Below are positions 1 through 64,000 of a stretch of 64,000 bases of DNA, piece by piece. Location of the stretch: the sequence record MH791411.1; one strand, 5' to 3'. The first letter of the stretch is position 1. Each line of letters starts with the position of its first letter. The position numbers and the translations under genes are program-made. The notes under the pieces were generated by a model. The model was given only the letters and a program-made list of their open reading frames with translations. It searched no databases and had not been told where the DNA came from.

Positions 1-123
1 TGCATTATAATCACAATAACCATCTTCTGTAATCGTCCCTAAGAAAGCAGACTTTTTAGGAATGGATGTTTGAGCTTTAGCAGCGAATTGGCCTTTTGCT
101 AATTGTTCACGAAAACTGAGCAT
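1..123 (-). CDS. hypothetical protein, N-terminal part (runs off window)
   Basis: ATG at 123 with GGGAG RBS; frame MLSFREQLAKGQF... open to position 1; not in ORF track. Confidence 0.6.
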   Translation of the reverse strand, partial: MLSFREQLAKGQFAAKAQTSIPKKSAFLGTITEDGYCDYNA

Positions 124-168
124 AATAGTATCTCCCAAATTGTTACGAAGAACTTGTGTTCTTCATTA

Positions 169-411
169 TTATTTAGGGTTGCTCGAAACCTCTACTGAAG
201 CGATGAATGCCAAAATATCATCTTTACTGAAAGCTTCAATAATATAAGCAACCGCTTTATCGTACTGTTCTTTCTTAGTAGTGTATTCTTTCATTTTGTG
301 AATTTTACGTTGTGCTTTAACTTTTGCAGCTTCCATATCAGGCATTTTAAATTCAACACCCAATGTGTCAGCTAAATGTTTTGCACGAGATGATACTTTA
401 TCAATATTCAT
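169..411 (-). CDS. hypothetical protein
   Basis: 80 aa ORF coupled to glutaredoxin stop. Confidence 0.75.
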   Translation of the reverse strand: MNIDKVSSRAKHLADTLGVEFKMPDMEAAKVKAQRKIHKMKEYTTKKEQYDKAVAYIIEAFSKDDILAFIASVEVSSNPK

Positions 412-659
412 TAATTCCAGCGACCTTCTTTAAGACCTTCAACGAAACCAGTACAGCCACCTGGAACGTAAACATCGTTTACGAAAATTTGTGGAACCTG
501 TCGTACTGGCTCACCACATAGTTCAGATAGTTTAGCACCATCAATACCAGCGGTAACAATATCGATAAACTCCATATCAAATTTGTTATTTTCACATACT
601 GCTTTAGCAGTGTCGCAGAATTTACAACCAGTAGTGCGACCATAAATTTTAACTTTCAT
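411..659 (-). CDS. glutaredoxin (T4 NrdC/NrdH-like)
   Basis: CKFC redox motif, VRQVPQIFVND cis-Pro motif, GG motif. Confidence 0.92.
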   Translation of the reverse strand: MKVKIYGRTTGCKFCDTAKAVCENNKFDMEFIDIVTAGIDGAKLSELCGEPVRQVPQIFVNDVYVPGGCTGFVEGLKEGRWN

Positions 660-1093
660 TTCTTTTCCCTTTATTTCGTTGAAACATTGTAACAGCCTTT
701 ATTATACTGTTACACATTCGTTCAGTCAAATACTTTTGACAATCTAGTACATCAATGTACATGAACTTATCCAATTCTGGGTGACTTCTACCATATCTGT
801 TTGTGTAAGTACTTTTACACTCCAACTCTTCTGGTATAGGCTTATCTTTGGCTGTATAGAAAAATAAAACTAAACGTTTCCCCTTTCTATACGATACATC
901 ACCAAGAAACAGAAGATCATCTTCATCGATTTCATATCCTGTCTCTTCGTAGCATTCACGTACAGCAGCCTCTTTAAATGTTTCTGTACCTTCAGTTTTA
1001 CCTTTAGGTAAGTCCCAGTGATTCTGTCCGTGTTGTATGCCCGATAAGTATCTGACCATCACGATAAAATATTATACCACAGCTATAACGCAT
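649..1093 (-). pseudogene. Nudix hydrolase with an apparent 1-nt frameshift near 1030-1034 (or sequencing error)
   Basis: Nudix box GKTEGTETFKEAAVRECYEETG in 649..1062; the expected N-terminal strand MRYSCGIIFYRDGQILIGHTT starts at ATG 1093 in another frame and joins GQNHWDLPKG if one base is removed. Confidence 0.7.
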
Positions 1094-1135
1094 AATCTTA
1101 TCTCTTTATCATCAAGTGATGTTCAGATACTAGTA

Positions 1136-1163
1136 ATTATATCAGAAGATGTTAACTTGTCCC
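1136..1163 (-). promoter_or_regulatory. putative phage promoter GGGACA-N16-TATAAT with extended -10 TG
   Basis: GGGACAagttaacatcttcTGATATAAT upstream of the Nudix ATG at 1093; same motif at five other sites. Confidence 0.65.
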
Positions 1164-1168
1164 AGCTT

Positions 1169-2284
1169 TTAGAACATTTGCTTGATTGCTTCAATACGCA
1201 ATTCAGCAACAAAATCACGAATCTCCGATGTTTGGAGTTCACCATCTTTCACTAACTGCTGAATATCAGGTAATTCAACATCAGTATAACGATCATAAAC
1301 TTTAATAATCAAATCTTCAAGTTCAGAATCAATTTCTTTGTTCAAAATGAAGTTTTCCAGTACTTTGTAAAGGAAATCTTCACCACCATTGTTTTTGATA
1401 TTCATATCCAGTAAGATTTGTCCCATTTCAACTGGGGTCTTCTTACGGAAGGTTTTAATATCTTCACGGAAACGCTTGATGTAATTACTAAACTTAACGT
1501 ACTTAACTGGAACCTTAATGGAACCGTTAAGTACTGAATCATTATTTACTTCTTCATTTTCAAGAAGTACTGTCCATAAGAAATATGGTTTATATTCTTC
1601 TGTACAATTTGCAGCGATAGAATCAATTAATTCCAGACGTTTCTTGGTAACTGGAACTGTAGTAAATGCCTTTTCGTAATAACCAAATTGTACCAGAGTT
1701 TTGATAAACTTGGAAGGGTTTTCTTCAGAAAGTGCTTTTTCGAATTCAACAAAAACACGATCTGGAACTAGATGGTCTAGTTCACCAGTACTAACCATAT
1801 CTTTACACATTGTCATAGTATCATCATGGATTGTAAAGTCGGAGTAACGCGTAGCGAAACGGGCCAAACGTAGAACACGCAATGGATCTTCTTTAAAGTG
1901 TTCTGATACATGACGAAGTACTTTGTTCTTGATATCAGCTTTCCCGCCATAAGGGTCGATGTGAATCTGGAGTACTGGATCATATGCAATACTATTGATT
2001 GTGAGATCACGACGATATAGATCTTGTTCTAGTGTCACACCTTTTGTATTCACTTCGAAGCCACCATATCCAGTACCAGTTTTACGCTCAGTACGGGCTA
2101 ATGCGTGTTCATTACCTTCTGGACTTAGATATACAGGGAAATCCTTACCTACTTGCTTGTATCCAATACTTTGCAAGTATTTAATATCGGATTCGGTAGC
2201 ACCGACAATAACATAATCTTTGTCTTTTGCACGGATACCCATTAAACGGTCACGAACGTAGCCACCAACCAAATACTTTTTCAT
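1169..2284 (-). CDS. cca: tRNA nucleotidyltransferase (CCA-adding enzyme, class II)
   Basis: YLVGGYVRD, DKDYV, VGKDFPV, ALARTERK, DLYRRDLTINSIA, EDPLRVLRLARF motifs. Confidence 0.96.
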   Translation of the reverse strand: MKKYLVGGYVRDRLMGIRAKDKDYVIVGATESDIKYLQSIGYKQVGKDFPVYLSPEGNEHALARTERKTGTGYGGFEVNTKGVTLEQDLYRRDLTINSIAYDPVLQIHIDPYGGKADIKNKVLRHVSEHFKEDPLRVLRLARFATRYSDFTIHDDTMTMCKDMVSTGELDHLVPDRVFVEFEKALSEENPSKFIKTLVQFGYYEKAFTTVPVTKKRLELIDSIAANCTEEYKPYFLWTVLLENEEVNNDSVLNGSIKVPVKYVKFSNYIKRFREDIKTFRKKTPVEMGQILLDMNIKNNGGEDFLYKVLENFILNKEIDSELEDLIIKVYDRYTDVELPDIQQLVKDGELQTSEIRDFVAELRIEAIKQMF

Positions 2285-2285
2285 A

Positions 2286-2408
2286 TCATTCCCCCATCAA
2301 CCAATCACGTAGACGTTCCCAGAAGCCTTTTGGCTGATATTCTGGATATTCATATTCATCTGTTCCTTGCTCGGAAACACCCCAATCTTCTTCTAATACT
2401 GTAATCAC
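2286..2408 (-). CDS. 40-aa acidic peptide with C-terminal amphipathic helix (paralog A)
   Basis: GGAGG RBS plus GTG start; MITVLEEDWGVSEQGTDEYEYPEYQPKGFWERLRDWLMGE; paralog at 3418..3543. Confidence 0.75.
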   Translation of the reverse strand: MITVLEEDWGVSEQGTDEYEYPEYQPKGFWERLRDWLMGE

Positions 2409-2419
2409 AATGCCTCCAA

Positions 2420-2863
2420 TTAAATTAATCTATCACGTAGACGGTCGTAATATTTTGCATGTATATCTAGTATACACTGAAATGATGGATAGTCAATACT
2501 AAATGTATCATCAATGAACATGTACTGAAGAAGTGTTTCTGGTCCATTATCAACAACTGGTAATGTCCCTTCTTTTTTTGATAGGGTGTGCCACATCAAC
2601 TCACTTTCAATATGGTGAGTTGCGTATGTCAATTCAATCTTACTTTTTCGTAGTAAAATTAACAATTCATCATTGTCATCGAGTGCATTACGAAATTTAA
2701 TACGAACTGTACCCTGGAAATTATTAGTGTACATAACACGATGATGATTGTATGAAATTAAACCACGTCTTTCAGTACTGATTTCATGTTCAGCAAAGTA
2801 CTTTAACGTTTCATTAAATTTTGGAATTTTACTTGCGTCCACCAATGTAATCCTCATATACAT
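2420..2863 (-). CDS. hypothetical protein (paralog family, C-terminal LQY-FIDDTF motif)
   Basis: shares LQYxFIDDTF with 2829..3242. Confidence 0.75.
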   Translation of the reverse strand: MYMRITLVDASKIPKFNETLKYFAEHEISTERRGLISYNHHRVMYTNNFQGTVRIKFRNALDDNDELLILLRKSKIELTYATHHIESELMWHTLSKKEGTLPVVDNGPETLLQYMFIDDTFSIDYPSFQCILDIHAKYYDRLRDRLI

Positions 2864-3242
2864 GATATACGTTCATTATACTATTATATAGTTCAAAGTC
2901 AAATCCAAATGTGTCATCAATGAACTGGTATTGCAGATATTCTTCATATGAAGCATCAATTGGTAATGATCCAGCACGAATATCATCTGATTTAAAATCG
3001 TCAATGTATCTTAATGTTATGTCTTCATCAACAGTAATATCTATCATCAACGTATCGTCACTGTACCAAAGGTTATGTATACGGATGTAAAGTTTCTTAG
3101 CACGATTAAAACTAGATACATTGGTATTGCGATGGAGTTTATCTAAGTTGAAGTAAAAACCAGGCTCGTTTTTACTTATGTTTTTCATATGTTCTGCAAT
3201 CGAATCAATTATATAATCAATGTTGAATGTTCTCATAAACAA
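2829..3242 (-). CDS. hypothetical protein (paralog family)
   Basis: YLQYQFIDDTF shared with 2420..2863. Confidence 0.75.
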   Translation of the reverse strand: MFMRTFNIDYIIDSIAEHMKNISKNEPGFYFNLDKLHRNTNVSSFNRAKKLYIRIHNLWYSDDTLMIDITVDEDITLRYIDDFKSDDIRAGSLPIDASYEEYLQYQFIDDTFGFDFELYNSIMNVYHVYEDYIGGRK

Positions 3243-3418
3243 ATCTCATAGCGGTTTGTGTTTGGATTGTAGCAATAGGTATCATTAATTTTAACACCAG
3301 GTTTAAGTGTTATTGTTGTTCCTACTTCAGTACTGGGTTCTGCATCACAATAAATCATCACACCAACGCCACAGATTAAAGCTAAGATACAAATAATAGC
3401 ACATATTGTATATTCCAT
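3233..3418 (-). CDS. small membrane protein
   Basis: hydrophobic N-terminus MEYTICAIICILALICGVGV; start overlaps TGA of upstream peptide. Confidence 0.7.
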   Translation of the reverse strand: MEYTICAIICILALICGVGVMIYCDAEPSTEVGTTITLKPGVKINDTYCYNPNTNRYEICL

Positions 3419-3543
3419 CACTCCCCCATCAGCCAATCAAAGAGACGTTCCAAGAAGCCATTAGGCTTGTATTCTGGTTCTTTGTTCACGTCGGTTTCTT
3501 GTTCATAAACACCCAAATCTTCTTCAAGTATAATTGTATTCAT
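3418..3543 (-). CDS. 41-aa acidic peptide with C-terminal amphipathic helix (paralog B)
   Basis: MNTIILEEDLGVYEQETDVNKEPEYKPNGFLERLFDWLMGE; start overlaps upstream stop; paralog of 2286..2408. Confidence 0.75.
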   Translation of the reverse strand: MNTIILEEDLGVYEQETDVNKEPEYKPNGFLERLFDWLMGE

Positions 3544-3926
3544 TATATATTATACTCTATTATACCATCATCACTTTCACCAGACAACCACTTAATGTAA
3601 TTTACTTTGTAGAAATTAATCAATGCATAAGTGCTGTACTCAATCAACAAGTGATCTCTCAAGAATTCGTCTTGAGCATATCCATCTTCATCCAAATCTG
3701 TTGGAATATCAGTTTCTTTGTCTTGAATGTGTAAAGTTATTGTGTCTTTTGTTATACAAATTGTTATATGATTACAAATAGTAATGATGATTATGCTATA
3801 TGTTCTATTGAAATATATTGTGAAATCTTCATTAATATTATATCTTCGACTTTCTTCATATTTCTGATATGGGTCGAAATGTGATAAATTAACTTTAATT
3901 AATGTATTTCTCAACTTACACCTCAA
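3543..3926 (-). CDS. hypothetical protein
   Basis: 127 aa ORF in packed run. Confidence 0.65.
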   Translation of the reverse strand: MRCKLRNTLIKVNLSHFDPYQKYEESRRYNINEDFTIYFNRTYSIIIITICNHITICITKDTITLHIQDKETDIPTDLDEDGYAQDEFLRDHLLIEYSTYALINFYKVNYIKWLSGESDDGIIEYNI

Positions 3927-4307
3927 TCATATAAAGTAATTATACATTTTATTGTACAATATAAAAAGGTCTTTAACATTATCATAAGTAATATCAGATA
4001 CATCATGAATTAATGATAACTGGAAAAATGATGCTTCGTCTATCTCTACTGGGATTATAACATCATAGTCTTCGTCAATTTTATGGGTGTAGTATTTTAT
4101 GTGATCAGCATTCAACACAAGGTTGTATTTTGTATCATCTTCAATTAATCCGACAAATTGAGATTTTTGATTAATAAAAAATCCAATCCCAACACAACGG
4201 TTATCTGGATATGGATAGTACCATCTATTAATAACTAGGTGTTCAGGTAAGTCCATATCATGTGTTGATATTAAAGATTTTACAATTCCCATCCAGGAAT
4301 AATTCAT
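3927..4307 (-). CDS. hypothetical protein (DE-xFFQ paralog family)
   Basis: EIDEASFFQL C-terminal motif; GGAG RBS. Confidence 0.75.
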   Translation of the reverse strand: MNYSWMGIVKSLISTHDMDLPEHLVINRWYYPYPDNRCVGIGFFINQKSQFVGLIEDDTKYNLVLNADHIKYYTHKIDEDYDVIIPVEIDEASFFQLSLIHDVSDITYDNVKDLFILYNKMYNYFI

Positions 4308-4322
4308 AATTAAAACTCCATA

Positions 4323-4350
4323 AGAAAAGGGACAGAATAATCTCTGTCCC
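4323..4350 (-). terminator. intrinsic terminator
   Basis: GGGACAGA/TCTGTCCC stem followed by U-tract on minus strand. Confidence 0.8.
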
Positions 4351-4361
4351 TTTATTATATC

Positions 4362-4694
4362 TTACTCTTCGTCTTCAGTCAAGTCTTCTTGAACTGGATG
4401 TTCGGGGTGGTTACGGCGATGCAATTTGATGCTTTTGTCTTTACCTAAGACAGTTTCCATTTTTTCAAATGAATCACCAATTGCTTTGTATAAATCTGCA
4501 TCATCGGCGGTGACAATCTTACCACCTGATGTTAAAGTTACGGAATATTGATTCTTATGCTCTTTCTTCACATGAACACCGATATAAAGTACTGAAGAAT
4601 CACTAAACTTCGTTAGTGCATTTGCTTCTGCATGAATCGCGTCATTGATTGCTGGAGTAATATCAACATTACCTTGGATAACTAAATCTAGCAT
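4362..4694 (-). CDS. hpf: ribosome hibernation promoting factor HPF/RaiA (S30AE)-like protein
   Basis: I-GN-VDIT-AI start and D-DLYKAI-DSFEKME-L-K pattern typical of HPF. Confidence 0.8.
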   Translation of the reverse strand: MLDLVIQGNVDITPAINDAIHAEANALTKFSDSSVLYIGVHVKKEHKNQYSVTLTSGGKIVTADDADLYKAIGDSFEKMETVLGKDKSIKLHRRNHPEHPVQEDLTEDEE

Positions 4695-4719
4695 AATTTA
4701 CCTACCTTTTTTTTTAGTT

Positions 4720-5646
4720 TTAAAGATTACTAACTAACAATTCTGCACGGTTTCCTACTTGACGATACCATAGAGAATTCTTAATTTCTTTTTTGAACTT
4801 GTTATTATTTTGATTATCAACGCTTTTCCATAATTTATTGAAAGTATTTAACTTATCAACTCCTAATGTAAATGCCATCTCAAATAAAATTCGTTGTTGT
4901 TCAGCCGTAAGGTTTGTTGCATTTCTTTTCTTCAATAATAAAACTAAATCATTATTAGTTCGTTCCATGTCAGACAATAAAAGTTTATGTGCTTGTGACT
5001 TCGTAATACCATTACGATACTTACTTGCATCTGATTCTTTCTTTCCAAGATAATGTCCGTACCCAATAGTGAAGTTACCTTTTATATCACGATACGGATA
5101 AAATTTAGAATTTCGATATGGAACTCCAACTTTCCCACCAAGTAAACGTCGTTTGTTCTTGGACTGAAATTCAATAGAACCTTCAGCTTCTTTGATGTGA
5201 TTGACAATTTCTGGATCTTTATAATCAAACAGTACAGTCACATCTGGTAACAATACGTGCTTCAAATCCTCTTTTGTTGGGATAAAGATACCCTGAGAAG
5301 TATGAAGAGTTGCATTTAAGTTGATGTTCTTCAACAAAATGACATAATCTTCAATCTGTACATTTTTAGGTTTAAATTTCTGTGCAATAGAATAATAACT
5401 ATCACCAGGTTGAACCGTATAATGTTTCTCGCTGCTTGGAACTGCTTTTGGTACTGACACCTGTGGTAGTTCCTGCTTTTGAATTTGCGTAACTTGTGGT
5501 TTTAAATTATGCACCTGACTTTCGTCTAATGATGATGCACGATCACTTTGAGAAAAACCATAAAATCCAATCGCAGCGAATAGGGCTGATGAAACTAATA
5601 CGCCTACGGCAATTTTAGTTTTCAGTTCTTTTTTCGCTTTTTTCAA
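4720..5646 (-). CDS. membrane-anchored LysM plus T4-type (GH24-like) lysozyme
   Basis: N-terminal TM segment; LysM HYTVQPGDSYYSIAQKF; EAEG...YRDIKGNFTIGYGH catalytic pattern; probable TTG start at 5646 after GGAGG. Confidence 0.85.
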   Translation of the reverse strand: MKKAKKELKTKIAVGVLVSSALFAAIGFYGFSQSDRASSLDESQVHNLKPQVTQIQKQELPQVSVPKAVPSSEKHYTVQPGDSYYSIAQKFKPKNVQIEDYVILLKNINLNATLHTSQGIFIPTKEDLKHVLLPDVTVLFDYKDPEIVNHIKEAEGSIEFQSKNKRRLLGGKVGVPYRNSKFYPYRDIKGNFTIGYGHYLGKKESDASKYRNGITKSQAHKLLLSDMERTNNDLVLLLKKRNATNLTAEQQRILFEMAFTLGVDKLNTFNKLWKSVDNQNNNKFKKEIKNSLWYRQVGNRAELLVSNL

Positions 5647-5813
5647 AACGCCTCCTTTGTTGGTTGTTAACAATGAGCAATCACAAAGAGGGCAAAGAGG
5701 CCATTTGCAAAAGCCTCATTGGACTTTCTACAGTACTCAGTTGTTCTTTGGAACATTTAAGTAGTATAGCATACTTTTTAGTTATATCAAGACCTATTTA
5801 CCAAATAACCACA

Positions 5814-6224
5814 TTAATCGTAGTATGTTCTACCAATGGTGATGTGATATTTGAAATATTTAGATGCCAAACCCAGTTCATTACGAATATGTGCAATGAA
5901 ATCATCTTCAAACTCTATGATAAAGAATGACCCAGGTTTCTTATTGTCTTTTACTTCTTCGATGAAAGGATCGAACTTAATCTTAACTTTCATACCATCG
6001 TACTTTTTCCAGTACTCTGGATTTGGTGGCACTTCACCACGAACGATACTGACATGTGCTCCCCATTGTGGGTCTTTAATATCAATATGTAAGTCAGTTC
6101 TGATGAAGTACTGGTAGTATCGAACCAACTGTAATGGAAGTTGCAGTACTAACCAGAAGTCCTTCTTCTTTTTCATAGTGCCACGATCTGGATCATACAC
6201 CAGAGTTCCTTCCATTTCAATCAT
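5814..6224 (-). CDS. 2H phosphoesterase superfamily protein
   Basis: two HxS/T motifs (AHVSI, YHITI) about 70 aa apart. Confidence 0.7.
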   Translation of the reverse strand: MIEMEGTLVYDPDRGTMKKKKDFWLVLQLPLQLVRYYQYFIRTDLHIDIKDPQWGAHVSIVRGEVPPNPEYWKKYDGMKVKIKFDPFIEEVKDNKKPGSFFIIEFEDDFIAHIRNELGLASKYFKYHITIGRTYYD

Positions 6225-6231
6225 ATTTTAC

Positions 6232-6435
6232 CTATAAATTTACATATATATTTTTATTTTCAATACGAACATAAGTTTCTAAAACATCTTTCGGAATTTT
6301 ATTACTTGTTTTGTACCATGTAGTATTATCTACTAAAACAAAAGTTTCACCTTCAGTTTCACCAAATGTACTTAGTGCATAAATGAAGTAGTTTGGTGAT
6401 GCACTACAATAAACATCAGCATTAATTTCAATCAT
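6232..6435 (-). CDS. hypothetical protein
   Basis: 67 aa ORF in packed run. Confidence 0.65.
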   Translation of the reverse strand: MIEINADVYCSASPNYFIYALSTFGETEGETFVLVDNTTWYKTSNKIPKDVLETYVRIENKNIYVNL

Positions 6436-6438
6436 ATT

Positions 6439-6570
6439 TTACACCACAATAAAGCTTAATACAACGAGTGTAATAAACACACCCACAATGGCGGTCATTT
6501 CAGGGTTAGCATCGTATGTATAACGGATGCACTTTAGAAAATCTTTACCAAACTTTTTTAGTCCATTCAT
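6439..6570 (-). CDS. 43-aa membrane peptide
   Basis: MNGLKKFGKDFLKCIRYTYDANPEMTAIVGVFITLVVLSFIVV fills intergenic gap; AGGA RBS; not in ORF track. Confidence 0.65.
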   Translation of the reverse strand: MNGLKKFGKDFLKCIRYTYDANPEMTAIVGVFITLVVLSFIVV

Positions 6571-6581
6571 ATATTTTCCTT

Positions 6582-6938
6582 TCATTTCTTGTGTAAAGGG
6601 TCGGCACTTTCATAATAGATTGTATCATTGTTTCGCTCAATAGTAAAACTCTTTTGACACAACTCTTCAGCTAAACCCTTAGCATAGTTTAATACATCTC
6701 GGTTGAGATATACTTCTTCTTTTGGGAAGCGTGGGTACTGAATAATACGAGCACACATTCCACTTTCAAGACCACCCGTGTAGATGTATTCACACGGAAT
6801 CAATTGTACACAAAATCCAAGCTTGAATGCAAACTTTCGTGTGTACTCTCTTGCTGTTTGGATATCACCAGCAATATGAATATTCCAGTACTGTGTTTCA
6901 ACTGTACCTTTGTCGATGTATTTCATACTCATCTCCAA
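6582..6938 (-). CDS. hypothetical protein
   Basis: 118 aa ORF. Confidence 0.75.
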   Translation of the reverse strand: MEMSMKYIDKGTVETQYWNIHIAGDIQTAREYTRKFAFKLGFCVQLIPCEYIYTGGLESGMCARIIQYPRFPKEEVYLNRDVLNYAKGLAEELCQKSFTIERNNDTIYYESADPLHKK

Positions 6939-6955
6939 TTATAGCATAAAAAATC

Positions 6956-7351
6956 CTACTTGCCCAAATCTTCTATAATTCTTTTTATGATATCATTGTT
7001 TTCCAGACATAAAGTACTGAAATTTCTACCTGTTTTTTCATTGAGTTCATTAATCTCAAGCATAAGATAACCATAAGTGATATCTTGGACCCTACTTCGT
7101 TTTACCCTTGAGTACAGTCTGATGGGTACAGATACACGAGTATTCAAAAAGAATTCTGATAAATCATAACGATATACCAGGTATTCATTCTTGTAACGTT
7201 TACGACTGTACGATTCTAAACACTGTGGGAAACGTCTATCAAACATACTACTTCTTAGTTGAAGTGTGATTGGATCTAACTTATGCGAGAAATACTTTTT
7301 GATTATTTTATTAAATCTTGTTACATGTCGTTTACGCCATCTCATAATCAA
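6956..7351 (-). CDS. hypothetical protein
   Basis: 131 aa ORF, coupled overlap. Confidence 0.7.
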   Translation of the reverse strand: MIMRWRKRHVTRFNKIIKKYFSHKLDPITLQLRSSMFDRRFPQCLESYSRKRYKNEYLVYRYDLSEFFLNTRVSVPIRLYSRVKRSRVQDITYGYLMLEINELNEKTGRNFSTLCLENNDIIKRIIEDLGK

Positions 7352-7791
7352 ACCTTAAAAAATATAATAGGAAAGTATTTTGTTTCCGAATCTGAAATAC
7401 TGTTACAGTAATCTTTCAATTCATCATGGATAACATTCAAATGAATAGTAGGATAGTTCATAGGTTTCTGTACTGGGCCAGTGGCATATACGCAATCTGT
7501 TCTATCCCAACTTACATATTGGGTTGGGTAATTATCTTTAGTACGTTCTTCAATAATAATATTATATTCTGGTGTATTGAATATATACATATCACATTGT
7601 GAAATGTACTGAACATTAAAATCACCGTCAGTGAGATGGATCATGTTCCCATCGCAATATAAGCATGATGGTTCAGTGTATCCTAAAATTGAAGATAAAG
7701 TTCTGAAGTTTGCTCCTGGACCCAAATATACCAAATTCGTGTGTAAACAAATATCAATGAAACGTTTGAAGACTTCAGTTTCGTTATGCAT
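7348..7791 (-). CDS. hypothetical protein
   Basis: 147 aa ORF. Confidence 0.75.
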   Translation of the reverse strand: MHNETEVFKRFIDICLHTNLVYLGPGANFRTLSSILGYTEPSCLYCDGNMIHLTDGDFNVQYISQCDMYIFNTPEYNIIIEERTKDNYPTQYVSWDRTDCVYATGPVQKPMNYPTIHLNVIHDELKDYCNSISDSETKYFPIIFFKV

Positions 7792-7834
7792 ATAGATACC
7801 TTAAAAAGACCCCACATAGTGAGGTCAAACACTT

Positions 7835-8059
7835 TTAAACGTTATCATCATCCAAAGCTTCACGGTAAACATAATAAACATGCGTACCTAGAAGAACAAT
7901 GAGTACAATGAATACTAACCAGAATGGTACAAAATGCAGTACAAGTGCAAATGCCATTACGGTAATAACCATCACTACTGAACTAAAAATAAGACTAGTC
8001 GCTTTTTTAAATCCAGATAGTACATCATTCAAAACGCGTTTCATAAATGAATCAACCAT
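7835..8059 (-). CDS. small membrane protein
   Basis: two hydrophobic segments. Confidence 0.7.
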   Translation of the reverse strand: MVDSFMKRVLNDVLSGFKKATSLIFSSVVMVITVMAFALVLHFVPFWLVFIVLIVLLGTHVYYVYREALDDDNV

Positions 8060-8636
8060 TTTTATTCCTCATATAATCCATATAGCAAGTTCTGCATAGA
8101 CTCTTGTATGATTCATCACCACCAATAAAGACTTTATCAGTACTTTCAACTATACGGGCATTCATAGTGGCTTCTTTGCCACACTTCTGATTCTCACACA
8201 CGTTCTTAAGTTCATGTATGTCATCAGCTATTTCGAACAGTCTTTGTGAACCTTCAAAAAGATTGGATTCAAAATCTGTTCGTATTCCATAACAGGAAAC
8301 ATCAACACCATAATTATCTGCTATATCAGCTAAATGGTCAATTTGTTCTCTGTTTAAAAATTGACATTCATCAACATAGATACTGTTAATGTCAACGTCA
8401 TTTTTGAGTGTTTCTTTAACTTTAAGAAGAACACTAATGTCATTTTTTGGAATTACTTCAGCCACAGCTTCGATGCCAATTCTTGAAGTAATCTTTCCTG
8501 TTCCATAACGATCATCAAGTGCACTGGTTAAGTAAATTACCTTCATTCCATTTTTCTTATGGTTATATGCTTTTTGTAAAAGATGAGTACTTTTACCACT
8601 AGACATACTACCATAGTAATATACTAATTTACCCAT
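8052..8636 (-). CDS. tdk: thymidine kinase
   Basis: YYYGSMSSGKST P-loop, VDECQF, YGIRTDF, Cys pairs, GGDESY. Confidence 0.96.
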   Translation of the reverse strand: MGKLVYYYGSMSSGKSTHLLQKAYNHKKNGMKVIYLTSALDDRYGTGKITSRIGIEAVAEVIPKNDISVLLKVKETLKNDVDINSIYVDECQFLNREQIDHLADIADNYGVDVSCYGIRTDFESNLFEGSQRLFEIADDIHELKNVCENQKCGKEATMNARIVESTDKVFIGGDESYKSLCRTCYMDYMRNKNG

Positions 8637-8967
8637 TTTTAATCCTTAAGTACGTGTGCTTACATTTTAATCTATTACCATAGGATGAAATTGGGATATT
8701 GAACATTTCTATTTTACCCTCTTTTAAAAGACGTAAAATATCTGGATCGTTTTTGGTTTGTACACAATGAAGACCATTGACTTGAATTTCTAAACCATTC
8801 TTCAGAAATTCATAAATCTTCTGTCTACGCTTCCCACCGAAACTTTCATTTCGGATAACATCTCTTAGGTCTTTATATTCTTGTTTTAATTTCCTGTCAA
8901 AAAGTGTTCCATCTTTCTTTCTGATTTCTTCAATACACTTATATTGAGTTTGTCCTCTAAGAGCCAT
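8629..8967 (-). CDS. hypothetical protein
   Basis: 112 aa ORF, coupled. Confidence 0.7.
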   Translation of the reverse strand: MALRGQTQYKCIEEIRKKDGTLFDRKLKQEYKDLRDVIRNESFGGKRRQKIYEFLKNGLEIQVNGLHCVQTKNDPDILRLLKEGKIEMFNIPISSYGNRLKCKHTYLRIKNG

Positions 8968-9436
8968 ATTTGACCTCGTTGGGATATTTCTTCATTAACT
9001 CATGTAAACGTTGAATTTCCTGATTTTTCTTATGTTCTTCATCATACTTCTTAGAAAGATTCTTTCTTGTATTTGTTTCTAATAATCTAAAATTAGTACA
9101 GAATCTATCATTTTTAGCAACGTTCTTACGTAACGCATCAAAAACAGTACTGAAATAGTTATCCAATGGAAAAGAAGTATCAGTGTAATTATAAAAATCC
9201 ATTACATTTGTCATGTTCACATGTTCAATTACCGCACCATTGTGCGTTACAATAAACATTATATCACCATAATTACAATTTGCATCAGTACGGTACAGAT
9301 ATAAATGATCACGTAAATAATCTTTTAATTTATGTTCAATACCACTTTGTTCAGTACTTTGAAATACCAAAACTTCACCATAGATTGTATTACCTTCATA
9401 ATCATTTGGTTCGCGGATAATTGTAAGGTTATACAT
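8957..9436 (-). CDS. hypothetical protein
   Basis: 159 aa ORF. Confidence 0.75.
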   Translation of the reverse strand: MYNLTIIREPNDYEGNTIYGEVLVFQSTEQSGIEHKLKDYLRDHLYLYRTDANCNYGDIMFIVTHNGAVIEHVNMTNVMDFYNYTDTSFPLDNYFSTVFDALRKNVAKNDRFCTNFRLLETNTRKNLSKKYDEEHKKNQEIQRLHELMKKYPNEVKYGS

Positions 9437-9444
9437 ATAACTCC

Positions 9445-9735
9445 TTATACCGGAGATACGGTACTCAGCATTAGTAGAGCAGTGTTTTCATCAATTTCAT
9501 GTTGATTGTCGCACACTAGTGTTTCCAATAGGTCTGGATTGTAATAATAATGTTCATAATCTGTATCATTTGGAATATGGTGATAGGTGAATACAATGTC
9601 AAATACATCATCATCATTTTCACTTTTGAAACGCTTTAATTCTTCTACACTTTCAACAAAACCATACTCTTCAAAAGCAGTAGTACCATCAGTAAGTTTC
9701 ATCCATGCACTTGCGACAATTTTCATAAATTTCAA
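9445..9735 (-). CDS. hypothetical protein
   Basis: 96 aa ORF. Confidence 0.7.
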   Translation of the reverse strand: MKFMKIVASAWMKLTDGTTAFEEYGFVESVEELKRFKSENDDDVFDIVFTYHHIPNDTDYEHYYYNPDLLETLVCDNQHEIDENTALLMLSTVSPV

Positions 9736-9739
9736 ATCC

Positions 9740-10327
9740 TTATTCTTTTGTAATGTTTAGTTTAGAAACGAAATGGTTTTTTGCTTCTTCAAATGTCATT
9801 GAAGTATATACTGGGTTCCAATTATCGTCAAGATCTGTAAGTACTTTAACTTCCATTACATCTTCAGGTGTGTAGAATTGCCATGTGTTATGATCTGGTT
9901 CATAATTAGGGTCTAGTGTGAAAACTGTTCCATTCTGACCATAAACTTGTCCATCCTCTAATAGCTCACGAAATAAGTCTTCCCCAGTTGTTGGGTCTTC
10001 GTATGCATTATAAAAAGGAAAAACAACATTCTCAACATCAGTTCGGGTAGTACCATCGTCTTCATCATATTCAACCAAACGGTCCTGATGAAATACTAGG
10101 TCAATAGCACCAATGCGAGGTTTATTATGTGGAGTTTTGATTTCTTGCTGGGAATTGTAATCCATACGTTCAGTACTGATGAATACACCACTTGGTGTGA
10201 TTTCAATACCAGATACATTTTCTGGTGAATAATAAGAGTCACACATATCATCAATATGCATGTGCTCATGATACACTTCCATTTCAGGGTTCTGCATCAA
10301 CAGTGCTGCTAGGTCTTTTGCTTTCAA
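9740..10327 (-). CDS. hypothetical protein (paralog of 11067..11684)
   Basis: MKAKDLAALL...ITPSGVF...YTPEDV matches MKSHDLAKLL...VTPSGIF...YTPDDI. Confidence 0.8.
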   Translation of the reverse strand: MKAKDLAALLMQNPEMEVYHEHMHIDDMCDSYYSPENVSGIEITPSGVFISTERMDYNSQQEIKTPHNKPRIGAIDLVFHQDRLVEYDEDDGTTRTDVENVVFPFYNAYEDPTTGEDLFRELLEDGQVYGQNGTVFTLDPNYEPDHNTWQFYTPEDVMEVKVLTDLDDNWNPVYTSMTFEEAKNHFVSKLNITKE

Positions 10328-12632: not shown

Positions 12633-12718
12633 TCACTTCGTTCTCTCGTAACTCAAGAAGTCACTACGTTTACTTCGTAAACTAGTTCCTTCTGAAAATG
12701 ATAATGTACTTTAAAAGC

Positions 12719-13287
12719 TTGACGGGATTTGTTGAGGACTATTTCATCCCCCCGCAGGGGAATGAAGGTAATAAAAAAGAGACAATTAAGTCTCTCTTGA
12801 CGATGATGGCATCGGATATTATCGAATTGCGAATTTCTCAAATTTTGGACGGATCTTTCCTGTACCAAAATTTAGAGAGCGAAAGCGGGTTGCTCGGTTT
12901 CTCTCTATCGCAGTCATATGCAACGGTCGCTGGTCTTTTCATCAACAGCACTCAGTACTAAACTCTATTCGATCAAAGTAGTACCTGTTCTCAAATTTTG
13001 GACGCAACTTTCTTGTAAAATCGCGTCCACAATCCTTGAACTCCCTTAGCAAATTCGTAAGGTGCGAACCTTATACATCTATCTAGGAACTCTCTGTGTG
13101 CTTATTGGAGTTCTTTATACAGCCGTGTCGCCGTGATTCGTGGTCTTATCTCGTGTTTGTTTGATTGCCAGTACTCTAACAGGTTTCTTTTGCTGTTCGC
13201 TACAACGGTAAAGCTCATCTATCCTTTACATTTTCAAGAGAAGTAGGTTCTCATTATCCATTTTTCAATGTCCGTTGTCATTTTACA
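12719..13287 (-). ncRNA. candidate large structured ncRNA, copy 1 (about 570 nt, family not recognised)
   Basis: gene-free gap; multiple blocks nearly identical to 63533-64000; stems with G-U-compatible changes on minus strand; own promoter motif at 13294-13321. Confidence 0.7.
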
Positions 13288-13293
13288 ATATAC

Positions 13294-13321
13294 ATTATAT
13301 CACTAGGATGTATTATGTCCC
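13294..13321 (-). promoter_or_regulatory. putative promoter for the ncRNA candidate
   Basis: GGGACAtaatacatcctagTGATATAAT. Confidence 0.7.
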
Positions 13322-13322
13322 G

Positions 13323-21951: not shown

Positions 21952-21967
21952 ATTCTTTTTCCTTTAA

Positions 21968-22555: not shown

Positions 22556-22567
22556 AAGATTAATCCT

Positions 22568-28089: not shown

Positions 28090-28204
28090 AAAGTACTGCT
28101 AATATAAAAACTGCCCAAATTAGCAGTACTACATTGGTTGGAGCGGCAAAAAACATATATGCAGCAATTGCACTGCATCCGATTACAAGTTTAGCTAGTC
28201 TCAT
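28088..28204 (-). CDS. 38-aa membrane peptide
   Basis: MRLAKLVIGCSAIAAYMFFAAPTNVVLLIWAVFILAVL; ends at terminator; not in ORF track. Confidence 0.6.
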   Translation of the reverse strand: MRLAKLVIGCSAIAAYMFFAAPTNVVLLIWAVFILAVL

Positions 28205-30586: not shown

Positions 30587-30615
30587 ATAAAAAGTACTGC
30601 CACTATAACAGTACT
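30587..30615 (-). terminator. intrinsic terminator whose stem arms are AGTACT sites
   Basis: AGTACTG/CAGTACT arms plus U-tract. Confidence 0.65.
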
Positions 30616-40028: not shown

Positions 40029-40295
40029 TTATTCTACCGTATTAAGTTTCTGACAAATCATGTCAGCTTCAACACGGTCTTTATAATAAATGGTAAAACC
40101 AAATTTACCAGTTACTTTATACTCTTTACAAGTTAAACAATTTACAATGTAGTACTTGTTGTTTTGTGCTGAAAATCGTACTTCATGATTACGCATCACT
40201 GGTGGAGTAGTATTATCATTTAATACCATCATCACTAAAAGTACAAGAATCACAACTGCAAATGGAATACCTAAAATCAAGAAAGTCAAAGTCAC
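40029..40295 (-). CDS. membrane-anchored hypothetical protein
   Basis: N-terminal TM. Confidence 0.7.
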   Translation of the reverse strand: MTLTFLILGIPFAVVILVLLVMMVLNDNTTPPVMRNHEVRFSAQNNKYYIVNCLTCKEYKVTGKFGFTIYYKDRVEADMICQKLNTVE

Positions 40296-44212: not shown

Positions 44213-44221
44213 AGTAATTCC

Positions 44222-45013: not shown

Positions 45014-45032
45014 AATTACCTCCTATAAATGA

Positions 45033-46451: not shown

Positions 46452-46462
46452 TGTATATTCCC

Positions 46463-50730: not shown

Positions 50731-51034
50731 ATTCTACTCCTTTGTATATAAATTTACCAATATCTTCGATGTATAAACAGATTCCACCTCGATCATTTAA
50801 CACAAGCCAATCACCAAAACCACAACTGATGTTGCATATATTAAATTCTTCAATACCATCCGGTGAATACGCAATGAATGGACATATTTCATCTGATATA
50901 CCATTTACATAGTTATTACATATTAAATCAAATATATGTGAACTATAAGAATTATCAGTACTGAAAATGTGCATTAATGAACTAGATAGAATTACTATTG
51001 TTTTTTCCCACATTTTTAAAAAATCGTTATTCAC
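50705..51034 (-). CDS. hypothetical protein
   Basis: 109 aa ORF. Confidence 0.55.
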   Translation of the reverse strand: MNNDFLKMWEKTIVILSSSLMHIFSTDNSYSSHIFDLICNNYVNGISDEICPFIAYSPDGIEEFNICNISCGFGDWLVLNDRGGICLYIEDIGKFIYKGVEYVNNRSSY

Positions 51035-57210: not shown

Positions 57211-57948
57211 TTAGAAATATACCATACCCATCAATTCTGAATCTTCAGGGCGAGTATAGCCTTGTTTCTTAACTTTAAAGTAGAAGGATTCATTGTCTTC
57301 TAAATTATAACGTTTCTTCAAGCAACGGGTATATGTCTGGCAATTAGGATGAACCCATTCATATATATGAACACCATCTTCATTATAACCATTTATACTA
57401 CAACGGTTGCCTTCATGTTTCTTGTAGTTCTTGCTTTTCTCGGTAAATTCTTTTACAGCAGTAGTACTTGGTGATTTATATTCAAAAGGAACTTCAGTCA
57501 TACGGAAATAATAATATTGATCGTCTTCATCATATCCCAAGAGCACTGTGTTAGTTTCACGTACATTGTAATGATTCTTACTTTTCAATTCATTTTCATA
57601 TATATCTTGAAGTACTTCTGCAAATACTGTAGTACTGTCAGCATTTGGGTTGGATACACCTGATACTCTTCGTTCAATAATAAAATCAGTATATTTGCGG
57701 TCTTCTGCAATGTCTTCATTCATATAAAGACTAACGAACTTATCCTTGTACGTCTTTACACTGTATTGTTTACTTTGAACTTCGCTATATACATCTGCTA
57801 ACATATTCTCCTGACCGCACTGCACACCACTTACAGAATAAGCACATGCATGTTCAGCCATCACTGATGTTAACATTTGAAAATTTGCCATGTTTAATTC
57901 ATTCGCCATCTCTGTAGCGAAACGGATACGGTCAAGCACTTTACACAC
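57211..57948 (-). CDS. hypothetical protein
   Basis: 245 aa ORF with GGAG RBS and promoter motif upstream. Confidence 0.75.
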   Translation of the reverse strand: MCKVLDRIRFATEMANELNMANFQMLTSVMAEHACAYSVSGVQCGQENMLADVYSEVQSKQYSVKTYKDKFVSLYMNEDIAEDRKYTDFIIERRVSGVSNPNADSTTVFAEVLQDIYENELKSKNHYNVRETNTVLLGYDEDDQYYYFRMTEVPFEYKSPSTTAVKEFTEKSKNYKKHEGNRCSINGYNEDGVHIYEWVHPNCQTYTRCLKKRYNLEDNESFYFKVKKQGYTRPEDSELMGMVYF

Positions 57949-60621: not shown

Positions 60622-60627
60622 TATGTA

Positions 60628-61531: not shown

Positions 61532-61796
61532 TTACTTCGTCATGTGTTAACTTATCACTACGCTCTAGAACATTGATGATGAATGGTGTTTGACTATATA
61601 ATTCAGCCAGAAACGCAACTTCATCAGATGTATAAGAATATCCCATAGGAACAACTTGTGCAGTCCAGTTTCCTAAAGTTTTGTTTGCAATGATTGCAAC
61701 CACCGTATTACCTTTGAATTCAACATGGATTGAACGGAAACCCGAATCCTCATTCTGATCCCAAAGTACTGGGTTAGTTTTAAACAGTACTGACAT
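61503..61796 (-). CDS. hypothetical protein
   Basis: 97 aa ORF. Confidence 0.7.
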   Translation of the reverse strand: MSVLFKTNPVLWDQNEDSGFRSIHVEFKGNTVVAIIANKTLGNWTAQVVPMGYSYTSDEVAFLAELYSQTPFIINVLERSDKLTHDEVIDFLANLHV

Positions 61797-61798
61797 AG

Positions 61799-62332
61799 TT
61801 ATTTCCTCATGTATTTTATTACATCTTCAAATAGTTTAGTTTTCAGTGCATCATCATTACCAGGTAGAAAAGTACTGAAGCTATTAAAATCTTCATTCTT
61901 GGCAAACTCACGCATCTGTGTGGAACTGTAGCGACTTATATTTCGGTCAATTCCAGCTTGAACTGCCTTGATTGAACAAAAATTATATAACTTCCCATTG
62001 TACGTGTCAAGTGTTTTTTGGAATGGTTCAAGTCTATCTGAACCACATATGAAAAGAACATCTAAGTACTTTCCATCCAGTTCTCTCATTATATCAAACA
62101 GATTATCTTCTGTATAGATATTTTCTTGTACAGATGGGTAAAATCCTTCTGTATAGTACATTTTCAGTTCAGGAGGTAATGGGTTTTTGATGGCATCAGT
62201 ACTGGTACTAAGGAATATTTTCAAATCAGCATTGTACTGTTCTTGTAGTGCTTGAGCTTTTTCAAACACTAAACCATGACCTCGATGTACAGGGTTAATT
62301 CTTCCGAATGTCACTACGCATGTTTCTTTCAT
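61799..62332 (-). CDS. cytidylyltransferase-like (HxGH) nucleotidyltransferase
   Basis: TFGRINPVHRGH, KNPL, GSDR, SSTQMR motifs. Confidence 0.85.
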   Translation of the reverse strand: MKETCVVTFGRINPVHRGHGLVFEKAQALQEQYNADLKIFLSTSTDAIKNPLPPELKMYYTEGFYPSVQENIYTEDNLFDIMRELDGKYLDVLFICGSDRLEPFQKTLDTYNGKLYNFCSIKAVQAGIDRNISRYSSTQMREFAKNEDFNSFSTFLPGNDDALKTKLFEDVIKYMRK

Positions 62333-62853
62333 ATGTTCTTCATCACCTGACCAATAGATTTAAGATGGTTGATTTTAGCTGGAGTCAAATACTTATCCAG
62401 TACTATTAAACAACTAGGGAATGGAGCACTGTCAGTCTTTTTATCTGGTTCTTCAGGGATACCGAACTTTAAGCGACCTTTTATAAAACAAATACAATCA
62501 CAAACTTTCGCAGCATAATCCTGAAAGGCTATAGTATCAGTTCTTGATGGTACGAGAATCAGTACTGTAGCACCTTTGTTATATGCATCAACTGCCTTAG
62601 ATAACCACGTTTTCAAATCACTGTACGGTGGGTTGAGCCACACGATATTGTTTCCCCAGTCCTGTTCAAGTGAATTGTCTTCTGGTGTAAAGAAATTATC
62701 ACACAATGCTGTTTCTTTAACACATGCTGCATCTAGTGTAAATCCCCAGAGTTCATCCAAATCTTCAAAGAAATCCTTTGGAGTAGTCCAGTTATCTTTC
62801 CCAGTACTGAAATGTACTGATTGTTTTTTCTTCGAAGCATCCTTCTTCGACAT
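62329..62853 (-). CDS. phage DNA N6-adenine methyltransferase (Dam-like, NPPY)
   Basis: W-TP--FF--LD---GFTLDAAC, WLNPPYS, LVPSRTDT, GRLKF, APFPS. Confidence 0.9.
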   Translation of the reverse strand: MSKKDASKKKQSVHFSTGKDNWTTPKDFFEDLDELWGFTLDAACVKETALCDNFFTPEDNSLEQDWGNNIVWLNPPYSDLKTWLSKAVDAYNKGATVLILVPSRTDTIAFQDYAAKVCDCICFIKGRLKFGIPEEPDKKTDSAPFPSCLIVLDKYLTPAKINHLKSIGQVMKNI

Positions 62854-62869
62854 ACATAATTTCCTTTGA

Positions 62870-63415
62870 TTATAGACAGTTAAGTACTATGTCATCAAAA
62901 GTACTACTGTCAATGTTGTATTCATATAAAAATTTAAAATGTGATCCATAACGCATCATCAGATTAAACTCTTCTTCAGTATTAAATTTGTAATCATGAA
63001 GAGTTTCAAGGGTACATGTTAAACCTAAAAACTCAATAATTTCTGATGTTACATCATTTCCTGAATTGAAGTATTTAACCCAAACACATTTTCCTTGTGG
63101 GTTGAATTTTCTATATTCTCCTTCTAGTTCTCCATTGACGATATGTGCTTTCGCACTGATTAGATTATTACTATAACGCTCTTCGTAGTAGTTCCCATAA
63201 CGAGCTTTAAGAATTGTAGGCTTCTTGGTTGGGAATAACTTAATGGAAGTTAATTCAAAACCGCACTGCAACTCTTTGATGTACGAAATACATCCCTTTT
63301 CTTTAATCACAACAAAACCAGTAAAATTCTCTTGGTCTTGGTTCTGATTGTCTGAATCAACAAATTCTAGTGTTTTATAAGTGACGCTTTTAGATTTTTT
63401 AATAAATGACATCAT
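62870..63415 (-). CDS. hypothetical protein with MORN-like repeat and EEEF C-terminal motif
   Basis: NGELEGEYRKFNPQGK; TEEEFNLMMRYG. Confidence 0.7.
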   Translation of the reverse strand: MMSFIKKSKSVTYKTLEFVDSDNQNQDQENFTGFVVIKEKGCISYIKELQCGFELTSIKLFPTKKPTILKARYGNYYEERYSNNLISAKAHIVNGELEGEYRKFNPQGKCVWVKYFNSGNDVTSEIIEFLGLTCTLETLHDYKFNTEEEFNLMMRYGSHFKFLYEYNIDSSTFDDIVLNCL

Positions 63416-63532
63416 TATTCCTATGGAAACATCAATGACTGTACATGGCGTTGACTACATCAACACCAGTCGAATTATACACGCTTCGCATGTCTAATTC
63501 GACGAAAGTACTATGATTTGTTTTAATTAATA

Positions 63533-64000
63533 TTGACGGGGTTTGCTTGAGCATATTTCATCCCCCCCGCAGGGGAAAGAACAAAAAAAGTTTGACGCTG
63601 GTGGCCTTCACATAGTTCATATCACGAATTCTCTTACGAGGCGAAAGCGGGTTGCTCTGTTTCTCTCTATCGCGGTTCTTGTAGCAACGGTCGTCGGTCT
63701 TAAACATCCCGACACATAATACAAATACCATATGACCAGTACTTGTATTTGATTTCACGAATTTTGGACGCAACTATATTGTATAAATTACGACCGCAAA
63801 TTTCTCATGAAATCTCCCTTAGATAATTGGTAAGGTGCGATCCTTATATGTCTATCGAGGAACTCTCTTTATCCTATTGGAGTTCTTTATACAGCCGCAT
63901 TGCCGTGAGTGGTTCAAACTATGCCATCATCTAACGGGTTTCATTTGCTGTTCGTACTGAAAGGACTACTCATCTACCCTCTACTTTTCGAGTGGATTAG
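63533..64000 (-). ncRNA. candidate large structured ncRNA, copy 2 (5' end beyond window)
   Basis: collinear conserved blocks with 12719-13260, e.g. 63641-63676 vs 12879-12914 (34/36) and 63875-63897 vs 13103-13125 (23/23). Confidence 0.7.

Follow-up and report, generated by a model that had tools for sequence, protein, structure and literature searches.

The palindromic hexanucleotide AGTACT is greatly over-represented throughout the window, i.e., the whole 64,000-nucleotide stretch of DNA analyzed here, and we tentatively propose that it is a selected, DNA-level recognition word of the RaK2-like jumbo phages of enterobacteria, probably bound by a putative factor that reads double-stranded DNA with two-fold symmetry. 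The window corresponds to bases 186001-250000 of the record of Escherichia phage Ecwhy_1 (MH791411.1, 354,537 bp), and the two sequences are identical; Ecwhy_1 is a RaK2-like jumbo myovirus of the genus Asteriusvirus that infects E. coli. The G+C content of the window is 34.7%, 89% of it is coding, and the minus strand carries 116 of the 117 intact annotated genes. GenBank flags the record as UNVERIFIED, and several genes appear only as "similar to" features, which are probable frameshifts or pseudogenes (window positions 39139-39744, 40029-40292, 50705-51031, and 57211-57936); AGTACT copies inside these features were tallied as non-coding. Whole-genome counts cover the first 350 kb of the Ecwhy_1 record, and 35-50 kb of each of the other genomes was sampled.

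An initial annotation of the window, made by eye, had called AGTACT hyper-abundant, and its counts (22 copies in 1-10000, 18 in 19222-25264, and 12 in 43600-46500) are all exact. The window contains 182 copies against 18.3 ± 4.2 in 100 dinucleotide-preserving shuffles, the richest of which had 29, and each 2-kb bin holds from two to nine. AGTACT is the sole enriched member of the 64 palindromic hexamers in the window, at 8.5-fold over composition; the runner-up reaches 1.7-fold. Phages are textbook avoiders of palindromes, and the contrast that the initial annotation drew with this ordinary behavior is borne out in the very same genome: 26 of the 64 palindromic hexamers have no copy in the window, GGTACC and CGTACG have none in 350 kb, and GATC and CTAG are found at ~0.5-fold in Ecwhy_1. 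An excess of one word and a general avoidance of palindromes thus coexist.

The excess belongs to the exact word. Variants of AGTACT with one mismatch are present in the window at only 0.45-2.25-fold, and most of them exceed 1-fold, being mildly elevated rather than depleted. There is also a preference in the flanks (5' C in 87 and 3' G in 86 of the 182 copies), and CAGTACTG occurs 39 times where 0.6 occurrences would be expected. Across 350 kb, there are 970 copies of AGTACT (2.77/kb, 8.2-fold) and 216 of CAGTACTG, against 3.7 expected (58-fold). Spacing between sites is Poisson-like over the genome, with no excess of close pairs; the number of sites per gene likewise fits a Poisson distribution (35 genes lack a site, 39 expected), and sites are spread evenly along gene length. 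The genome shows two anomalies, a hot zone at 288-315 kb of the record and two stretches free of AGTACT.

Genes of every class carry the exact hexamer, at 2-3 copies/kb and in each frame, and both codon choice and the proteins themselves pay for its upkeep. Its density in the window is 2.85/kb in coding and 2.62/kb in intergenic DNA, and it is read in every frame: 81 sites encode Ser-Thr, 58 Val-Leu, and 24-25 x-Tyr-x. When synonymous codons were permuted within each gene, holding protein sequence and codon usage fixed, 40.2 ± 5.5 genic sites were expected against 164 found (z = 22.6; 4.1-fold); codon-order shuffling gave an expectation of 23, and the genic count is 7.5-fold above an independent-codon model. 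A shuffle that preserves dicodons, which the initial annotation had suggested as a refuting test, is ill-posed because every in-frame AGT-ACT is retained by construction. The codon-pair test was instead an analytic first-order codon model, which predicts 30.5 and 14.4 sites in the two frames left free, where 58 and 24-25 were found rather than a ratio of observed to expected near 1. The proteins carry the mark as well: Ser-Thr dipeptides number 130 in the window against 79 expected (and 79 for the reverse, Thr-Ser), Val-Leu dipeptides 149 against 101 expected (98 for Leu-Val), and 81 of the 130 Ser-Thr pairs are spelled AGTACT, compared with the 15% predicted by codon usage. The examples of each frame given in the initial annotation, namely Val-Leu at 1359, Ser-Thr at 2774, and Lys-Tyr-Phe at 2797, all in annotated minus-strand genes, are correct, and its judgment that the pressure lies at the DNA level and is not amino acid driven agrees with the spread over all frames, the intergenic copies, the permutation, and the codon-pair model.

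The same word marks a whole clade. An excess of 6-10.5-fold was found in eight RaK2-like enterobacterial phages, including Ecwhy_1, which represent at least four named genera. Observed and expected counts are 126 and 16.8 in the sampled part of the PBECO4 genome, 82 and 13.9 in Yersinia phage fHe-Yen9-04, 114 and 16.6 in Klebsiella phage RaK2, 114 and 16.8 in Cronobacter phage GAP32, 112 and 16.8 in Pectobacterium phage CBB, 152 and 16.4 in Erwinia phage Kaldavass, and 169 and 16.1 in Erwinia phage Hallingskeid. In each of these eight genomes, AGTACT outranks every other palindromic hexamer. The outgroups and E. coli stand at 0-0.3-fold: Pseudomonas phage PA5oct has 3 copies (16.6 expected), Agrobacterium phage Atu_ph07 3 (13.7), Xanthomonas phage XacN1 0 (10.0), T4 4 (13.6), the phi92-like coliphage W22 0 (11.8 in 35 kb), and E. 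coli K-12 3 (11.6). None of the sampled outgroups has any palindromic hexamer above ~4-fold, and the density of AGTACT in the phage is ~46 times that of the E. coli host sample. In the unrelated phages W22 and XacN1, the lack of AGTACT amounts to active avoidance, against which the RaK2-like clade stands out all the more.

The sites themselves turn over, and they do so more slowly than their surroundings. In an alignment of 44 kb with PBECO4 (84% identity), 79 of 117 sites are shared (67.5%), against 41% for hexamers of the same composition; 38 sites are specific to the Ecwhy_1 lineage and 37 to PBECO4, and an amino acid difference accompanies 40 of the 70 lineage-specific coding sites. Core orthologs were also aligned by codon with those of six phages of other genera (59-69% identity); here 21-37% of the Ecwhy_1 sites have AGTACT at the identical position, compared with 6-15% for controls. 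Overall, AGTACT is retained 1.5-3.5 times better than control hexamers, even though most sites turn over, and its density across core orthologs is steady at 2-3.3/kb. Given retention above that of controls together with constant density, sites must be lost more slowly than neutral sequence while new ones keep arising. The word has been kept in genera whose nucleotide identity has fallen to about 60%.

One part of the genome is markedly richer than the rest. The near-identical phage fEgEco12 has a perfect direct terminal repeat of 20,993 bp at positions 1-20,993, which maps to Ecwhy_1 287,912-309,864, and the hot zone of Ecwhy_1 is therefore the terminal repeat. The record of Ecwhy_1 gives the genome in permuted form, and the 20,993-bp direct repeat of its termini appears there in one copy. 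This repeat holds 132 copies of AGTACT at 6.3/kb, the genome maximum, of which 17 are within the non-coding 1.7 kb at the genome end; its genes are small early genes with σ70-type promoters. Many AGTACT copies of the repeat hold a fixed position in these promoters, as in TTGACA-N9/10-AGTACTg-TATAAT: in 21 of the 192 strict promoter matches in Ecwhy_1, where ~1 would be expected, the word starts 7-8 bp upstream from the −10 hexamer. A second AGTACT often stands directly upstream of the −35 box, such that twin copies 22 bp, or two helical turns, apart bracket it. In CBB, a Pectobacterium phage of another genus whose record begins at an annotated 22.5-kb repeat, the density of AGTACT falls from 6.4/kb in the repeat to 4.5/kb over the following 27 kb and stands at 2.2/kb in the structural genes. 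Promoters in the CBB repeat have the form AGTACT-TTGACA-N11-AGTACTt-TATAAT, again with copies 22 bp apart, and the remainder of the spacer is unlike that of Ecwhy_1. A fixed position relative to the −35 and −10 boxes that is conserved between relatives, as is expected of an operator, is thus present in both Ecwhy_1 and CBB. The authors of the CBB study described these promoters as early, RpoD-like, and equipped with UP elements, and AGTACT goes unmentioned there (PMC5259590).

The exact-word specificity, the strong and old pressure, the above-neutral retention, the conserved twin placement at promoters, and the absence of any reported modification are the reasons why we favor, with some hesitation, the view that AGTACT is selected as a recognition site and is read on unmodified double-stranded DNA. 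Restriction-type and dimeric recognition typically show this kind of sharp specificity for a short palindrome. The postulated factor would be two-fold symmetric in its recognition of double-stranded DNA, in the manner of a restriction enzyme or a dimeric repressor; it would be phage-encoded or delivered with the virion and would read unmodified DNA. At early promoters it would sit where RNA polymerase binds and could gate pre-early transcription, whereas elsewhere the ~46-fold density over host DNA could let it selectively coat, mark, organize, or protect phage DNA. The initial annotation had offered four kinds of system for which the word might be a target, namely DNA binding, packaging, repair, or methylation; of these, DNA binding fits best, and methylation is unsupported.

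Several findings weigh against a dedicated binding factor. Neither annotation nor Pfam scans provided a candidate for the cognate protein: the annotated "starvation-inducible DNA-binding protein" is a DUF5856 protein, and the "DNA condensation protein" paralogs were rejected as readers because they are RCC1-repeat propellers whose name was carried over from a Pfam family. About 90% of sites are genic, Poisson-spaced, and without any pattern at the level of genes, which would be unusual for a transcription factor, and a second, genome-wide role is therefore needed that we purely infer. The promoter copies lie in repeated cassettes and are therefore not independent observations within one genome. 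The flank preference varies among genera. Finally, an island that is free of AGTACT and has 43 copies of AGTACA in a single orientation is not predicted by simple dimer binding. As to the condensation protein paralogs, twelve lie in tandem at 314,881-330,136 of the record, and for these RCC1-repeat β-propellers the annotation "putative DNA condensation protein" is no evidence of DNA binding.

That island, 8 kb at 272,475-280,466 of the Ecwhy_1 record, has no internal AGTACT and is situated just inside the terminal repeat. Its + strand carries 43 TGTACT, 13 TGTACA, and 12 TGTACC, so that the gene strand reads AGTACA and relatives, and GTAC overall is present at 3.6-fold. The 43 TGTACT are consecutive, uninterrupted by AGTACT or AGTACA, and the variant is found in all three frames (15/12/13) of mostly unrelated, non-paralogous genes. 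The second island (5.5 kb, record 282,515-288,043) is a tandem array of small paralogs with the mirror-image bias, AGTACA being on the + strand. Counts of AGTAC on the + and − strands are 0 and 34 at 274-280 kb of the record and 7 and 0 at 284-288 kb, and are balanced elsewhere. PBECO4, a second Asteriusvirus species, has both islands (at 117.5-123.5 kb and 127.5-132.5 kb), unchanged in polarity and about 80-85% identical; no such island is present in the first 50 kb of CBB. These observations suggest that the strand-specific half-word carries a meaning of its own.

It is accordingly possible, if unlikely, that the functional unit is a strand-specific AGTAC serving a directional DNA transaction, and that AGTACT is its bidirectional version, used where forks or enzymes pass in either direction; the candidates are the priming of lagging strands, a recombination nuclease that reads a Chi-like signal, and the loading or orienting of a translocase or clamp. 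The strand counts, the unbroken run of TGTACT, its occurrence in all frames of genes that are mostly not paralogs, the conservation of islands and polarity at the divergence of PBECO4, and the position just inside the terminal repeat all speak for this idea. However, polarity is limited to about 13 kb of one genus, CBB having no island in the part examined; the few sites of the second island may be non-independent, as it is a tandem paralog array; and the fixed placement in promoters goes unexplained. A polar signal would be an asymmetric word with a strand bias, but AGTACT is palindromic, and outside 250-288 kb of the record its variants are strand-balanced, with no genome-wide strand switch. 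No convincing origin signature was found at the polarity flip between the islands: AT- and GC-skew shift near 282 kb, though unconvincingly. We know of no Chi-like or primase signal that is palindromic.

Chi (GCTGGTGG), the FtsK-orienting polar sequences (KOPS), and the DNA uptake and uptake signal sequences (DUS/USS) offer a partial parallel: they too are over-represented words under selection for density, are tolerant of positional turnover, and mark "self" DNA for a DNA-processing machine. The single-orientation variants of the Asteriusvirus islands resemble such polar signals; AGTACT itself, unlike Chi, KOPS, or DUS, is palindromic and hence without orientation, and polarity is confined to those 13 kb. 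An idea that we consider improbable to much the same degree is that AGTACT, with AGTAC as its unit, is an unmodified viral "self" tag read by a clade-specific machine that tells phage from host DNA. The joint proposal, in which that machine also controls the pre-early promoters of the terminal repeat and directs a strand-specific DNA transaction in the single-orientation islands, is likewise doubtful.

The comparison that the initial annotation made with the cyanobacterial highly iterated palindrome HIP1 (GCGATCGC) is apt in quantity and evolution. Both are short palindromes that are hyper-abundant genome-wide (HIP1 by 15-300-fold, phage CAGTACTG by 58-fold, and the hexamer by 8-fold), are present inside and between genes and in all frames, and are as yet without an assigned function; conservation above that of controls argues for selection in both cases (PMC5861425), and the outer positions tolerate more variation than the core does (PMC4390886). 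The many-fold excess, the presence independent of frame and codon, and the conservation above controls that characterize such palindromes are thus all seen with AGTACT. Unlike HIP1, the AGTACT word is viral and AT-rich, is fixed in early promoters, and has its density maximum in the terminal repeat. HIP1 is also reported to be quasi-periodic over 10-90 kb; for AGTACT, the analysis covered short-range spacing, which is Poisson, and a genome of 350 kb is short for revealing such a periodicity.

The likeness probably does not extend to methylation. A cognate orphan methyltransferase and its methylation, which define HIP1, were not found for AGTACT in the present data, comprising the methylomes of relatives and the W22 genome. 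The idea would be that an orphan phage enzyme marks AGTACT and that a methylation-dependent repair or function creates and maintains the sites, and we consider it rather improbable. In its favor, the phage has a short C5-cytosine methyltransferase (PF00145), conserved at 63-100% identity in Asteriusvirus, Mimasvirus, Alcyoneusvirus, and Erwinia relatives, as well as the Dam-family enzyme of the window (PF05869); cognate methyltransferases occur alongside HIP1 and the alternate highly iterated palindromes (PMC4390886), and the soft outer positions of CAGTACTG recall the HIP1 substitution pattern. When native DNA of Hallingskeid and Kaldavass was compared with amplified DNA by nanopore sequencing, however, the modified sites reported were GATC, CCWGG, and, for Kaldavass, TGCAT, and no others (PMC11780129). 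Per 50 kb, AGTACT and GATC number 169 and 141 in Hallingskeid and 152 and 133 in Kaldavass; AGTACT being the commoner, its modification should have been at least as visible. Dam-type and Dcm-type enzymes already explain GATC and CCWGG, and the sensitivity patterns mentioned in the RaK2 paper (data not shown there) were compatible with Dam, Dcm, and CpG methylation (PMC3622015). CCWGG is unavoided in Ecwhy_1 (260 copies, 224 expected), which fits with a Dcm-type self-methylation. W22 pairs a 50%-identical homolog of the C5 enzyme with a complete lack of AGTACT, and AGTATT, the product of deamination, is undepleted (1.25-fold).

Because the methylomes of relatives omit AGTACT and W22 pairs the C5 homolog with zero AGTACT, methylation of the word is disfavored, with the proviso that the published methylomes are those of Hallingskeid and Kaldavass and not of an Asteriusvirus. 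The same two lines of evidence argue against both the Dam-family enzyme and the C5 enzyme as writers. The adenine methyltransferase g241 of Yen9-04 was also rejected, as it is absent from Ecwhy_1 and has homologs in the AGTACT-poor Atu_ph07; no g241-like gene was found in the unannotated gap beside endonuclease VII. A target of restriction-modification would be either modified or avoided, and AGTACT is enriched, with no modification of it in the relatives' methylomes. The Dam site GATC of enterobacteria, acted upon by SeqA and MutH, offers a partial parallel as a short palindrome found genome-wide at a spacing of a few hundred bp and used locally in timing at promoters and origins; GATC, however, acts via its methylation state and has no 8-fold enrichment.

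Of comparably low probability is that AGTACT is a functionless by-product, arising from a mutational or repair bias towards the word (biased gene conversion or very-short-patch-type repair) in the course of recombination-heavy replication. Equal density in coding and non-coding DNA, Poisson spacing, high turnover at constant density, and the many gains that came with an amino acid change (40 of 70) would all be expected of such a process, and it would likewise slow the apparent loss of sites. But a near-cognate substrate should then be depleted, and no one-mismatch neighbor is (0.45-2.3-fold, most above 1); this absence of any depleted neighbor word led us to reject a signature of very-short-patch-type repair, and the mild elevation of neighbors is more readily explained by decay from a selected word than by a repair process that uses up particular near-cognate substrates. 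Nor would biased repair account for a twin promoter placement that is fixed and conserved between genera, or for an island that has been spared for longer than the divergence of Ecwhy_1 and PBECO4. No Vsr-like gene is annotated, although the search was not exhaustive.

A signal at the level of RNA, in which AGUACU would serve hairpins and terminators or be the target of a sequence-specific ribonuclease or RNA-binding protein, is very unlikely. As the hexamer is self-complementary, any nearby pair of copies can form a stem, and the palindrome is always on the sense strand. Two such hairpins are listed in Table 1; in the one at 30593-30615, with copies starting at 30593 and 30610, AGTACT is indeed in both arms of a terminator-like structure, with a 10-bp stem and a U-run next to it, as the initial annotation had stated. 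Gaps of ≤40 nt, however, separate only 16 of the 181 pairs of neighboring sites in the window, and genome-wide, close pairs are not in excess. Sites are also found in the spacers of promoters, ahead of the transcription start, and in the 1.7 kb of non-coding DNA at the end of the genome, and the sense strands of the two islands bear different words, AGUACA and UGUACU.

More remote still is mimicry of the host SlmA-binding sequence, GTGAGTACTCAC, by which the phage would titrate or activate the nucleoid-occlusion factor and so block host division. The central six bases of the SlmA site are AGTACT (PMC3020112), and SlmA, like the factor proposed here, is a dimeric protein acting on unmodified DNA. 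Its required flanks, however, are those most avoided in the phage: G at −1 is found in 76 and C at +1 in 89 of 970 sites, GAGTACTC has 6 copies against 216 of CAGTACTG, GTNAGTACTNAC occurs twice, and the full 12-mer (GT.AGTACT.AC) never occurs in 350 kb. The host, moreover, has tens of SlmA sites and the phage about 1,000 copies of AGTACT, and SlmA mimicry was rejected on the flanks. An artefact of amino acid content, codon usage, or codon-pair preference, to which the high usage of AGT, ACT, and GTA among Ecwhy_1 codons might seem to point, has next to no probability, as it is refuted by the excess in all three frames and in intergenic DNA, by the synonymous-permutation and independent-codon nulls, and by the excess that persists in the frames left free by the dicodon model, and those codon preferences are themselves inflated by AGTACT.

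Conserved, clade-specific words with a DNA-level role are also seen in the nick-associated motifs of Pseudomonas phages (TACTRTGMC in tf and Rembedalsseter) and in connection with the nicks of T5 (PMC11780129). In contrast to AGTACT, a nick motif is asymmetric, is tied to one strand, is rare, at about 13 per genome, and falls where virion DNA is nicked; for RaK2-like phages, no nicks of this type were reported in that study (PMC11780129).

Two further features of the window touch on AGTACT less directly. The E. coli Chi octamer GCTGGTGG is over-represented, with six copies (10686 and 63597 on the + strand; 41002, 43337, 47906, and 55529 on the − strand) against about 0.4 expected. In 350 kb there are 7 on the + and 24 on the − strand, with about one expected per strand, and the excess is mostly on the gene strand; this could reflect protection from RecBCD or a codon effect. 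A pair of long intergenic elements, the first of which has an orthologous copy in PBECO4, may be a non-coding element of an undescribed kind. The initial annotation had called them copies of a non-coding RNA; each does contain two AGTACT, but that identity finds no support, as Rfam yielded no match anywhere in the window, including both elements.

Table 1. Location of AGTACT sites and associated features in the window.
Feature	Position	Strand	Remarks
AGTACT	1..64000	.	182 copies, 39 as CAGTACTG; roughly Poisson at 2.8/kb, in genes and intergenic DNA
Example of a frame-2 site (xxA GTA CTx, Val-Leu)	1359..1364	-	In phosphatase gene 1169-2284
Example of a frame-0 site (AGT ACT, Ser-Thr)	2774..2779	-	In annotated minus-strand gene
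Example of a frame-1 site (xAG TAC Txx, Lys-Tyr-Phe)	2797..2802	-	No counterpart in PBECO4, where the protein has Arg-Phe-Phe
Long intergenic element, copy 1	12633..13322	.	AGTACT at 12954 and 13170; 73% identical over 383 bp to copy 2
AGTACT pair 33 bp apart, at base of hairpin with 12-bp stem (AGUACUGCUAAU...AUUAGCAGUACU)	28092..28130	-	Intergenic, after nrdD-like gene; -15.8 kcal/mol
AGTACT pair 17 bp apart, forming hairpin stem followed by U-run (intrinsic-terminator-like)	30593..30615	-	Centroid stem 10 bp, -10.2 kcal/mol
Dam-family N6-adenine methyltransferase gene Ecwhy1_356	62329..62853	-	Pfam PF05869, E = 6e-33; candidate writer of GATC, not AGTACT
Long intergenic element, copy 2	63413..64000	.	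AGTACT at 63507 and 63738

A literature search covering about 8.4 million full texts found no prior description of AGTACT or CAGTACTG in RaK2-like phages. One palindrome is kept at about 1,000 copies in these genomes, although the host and every sampled outgroup under-represent it, and the pressure spans at least four named genera, whose hosts belong to Escherichia, Yersinia, Klebsiella, Cronobacter, Pectobacterium, and Erwinia. So strong and lasting a pressure implies a conserved putative reader, which may be a novel regulator of early transcription or a novel means of marking or protecting viral DNA. In practical terms, AGTACT is a simple diagnostic signature of the clade in metagenomes, and ScaI is expected to cut these genomes to fragments of about 360 bp. 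The phages, being of viral size and genetically tractable, also lend themselves as a model for asking what purpose highly iterated palindromes serve, a question now 30 years old. If the "self" tag were true, it would be a genome-wide recognition system of a kind undescribed for any virus, and jumbo phages without a nucleus-like shell would mark or shield their DNA without base modification.

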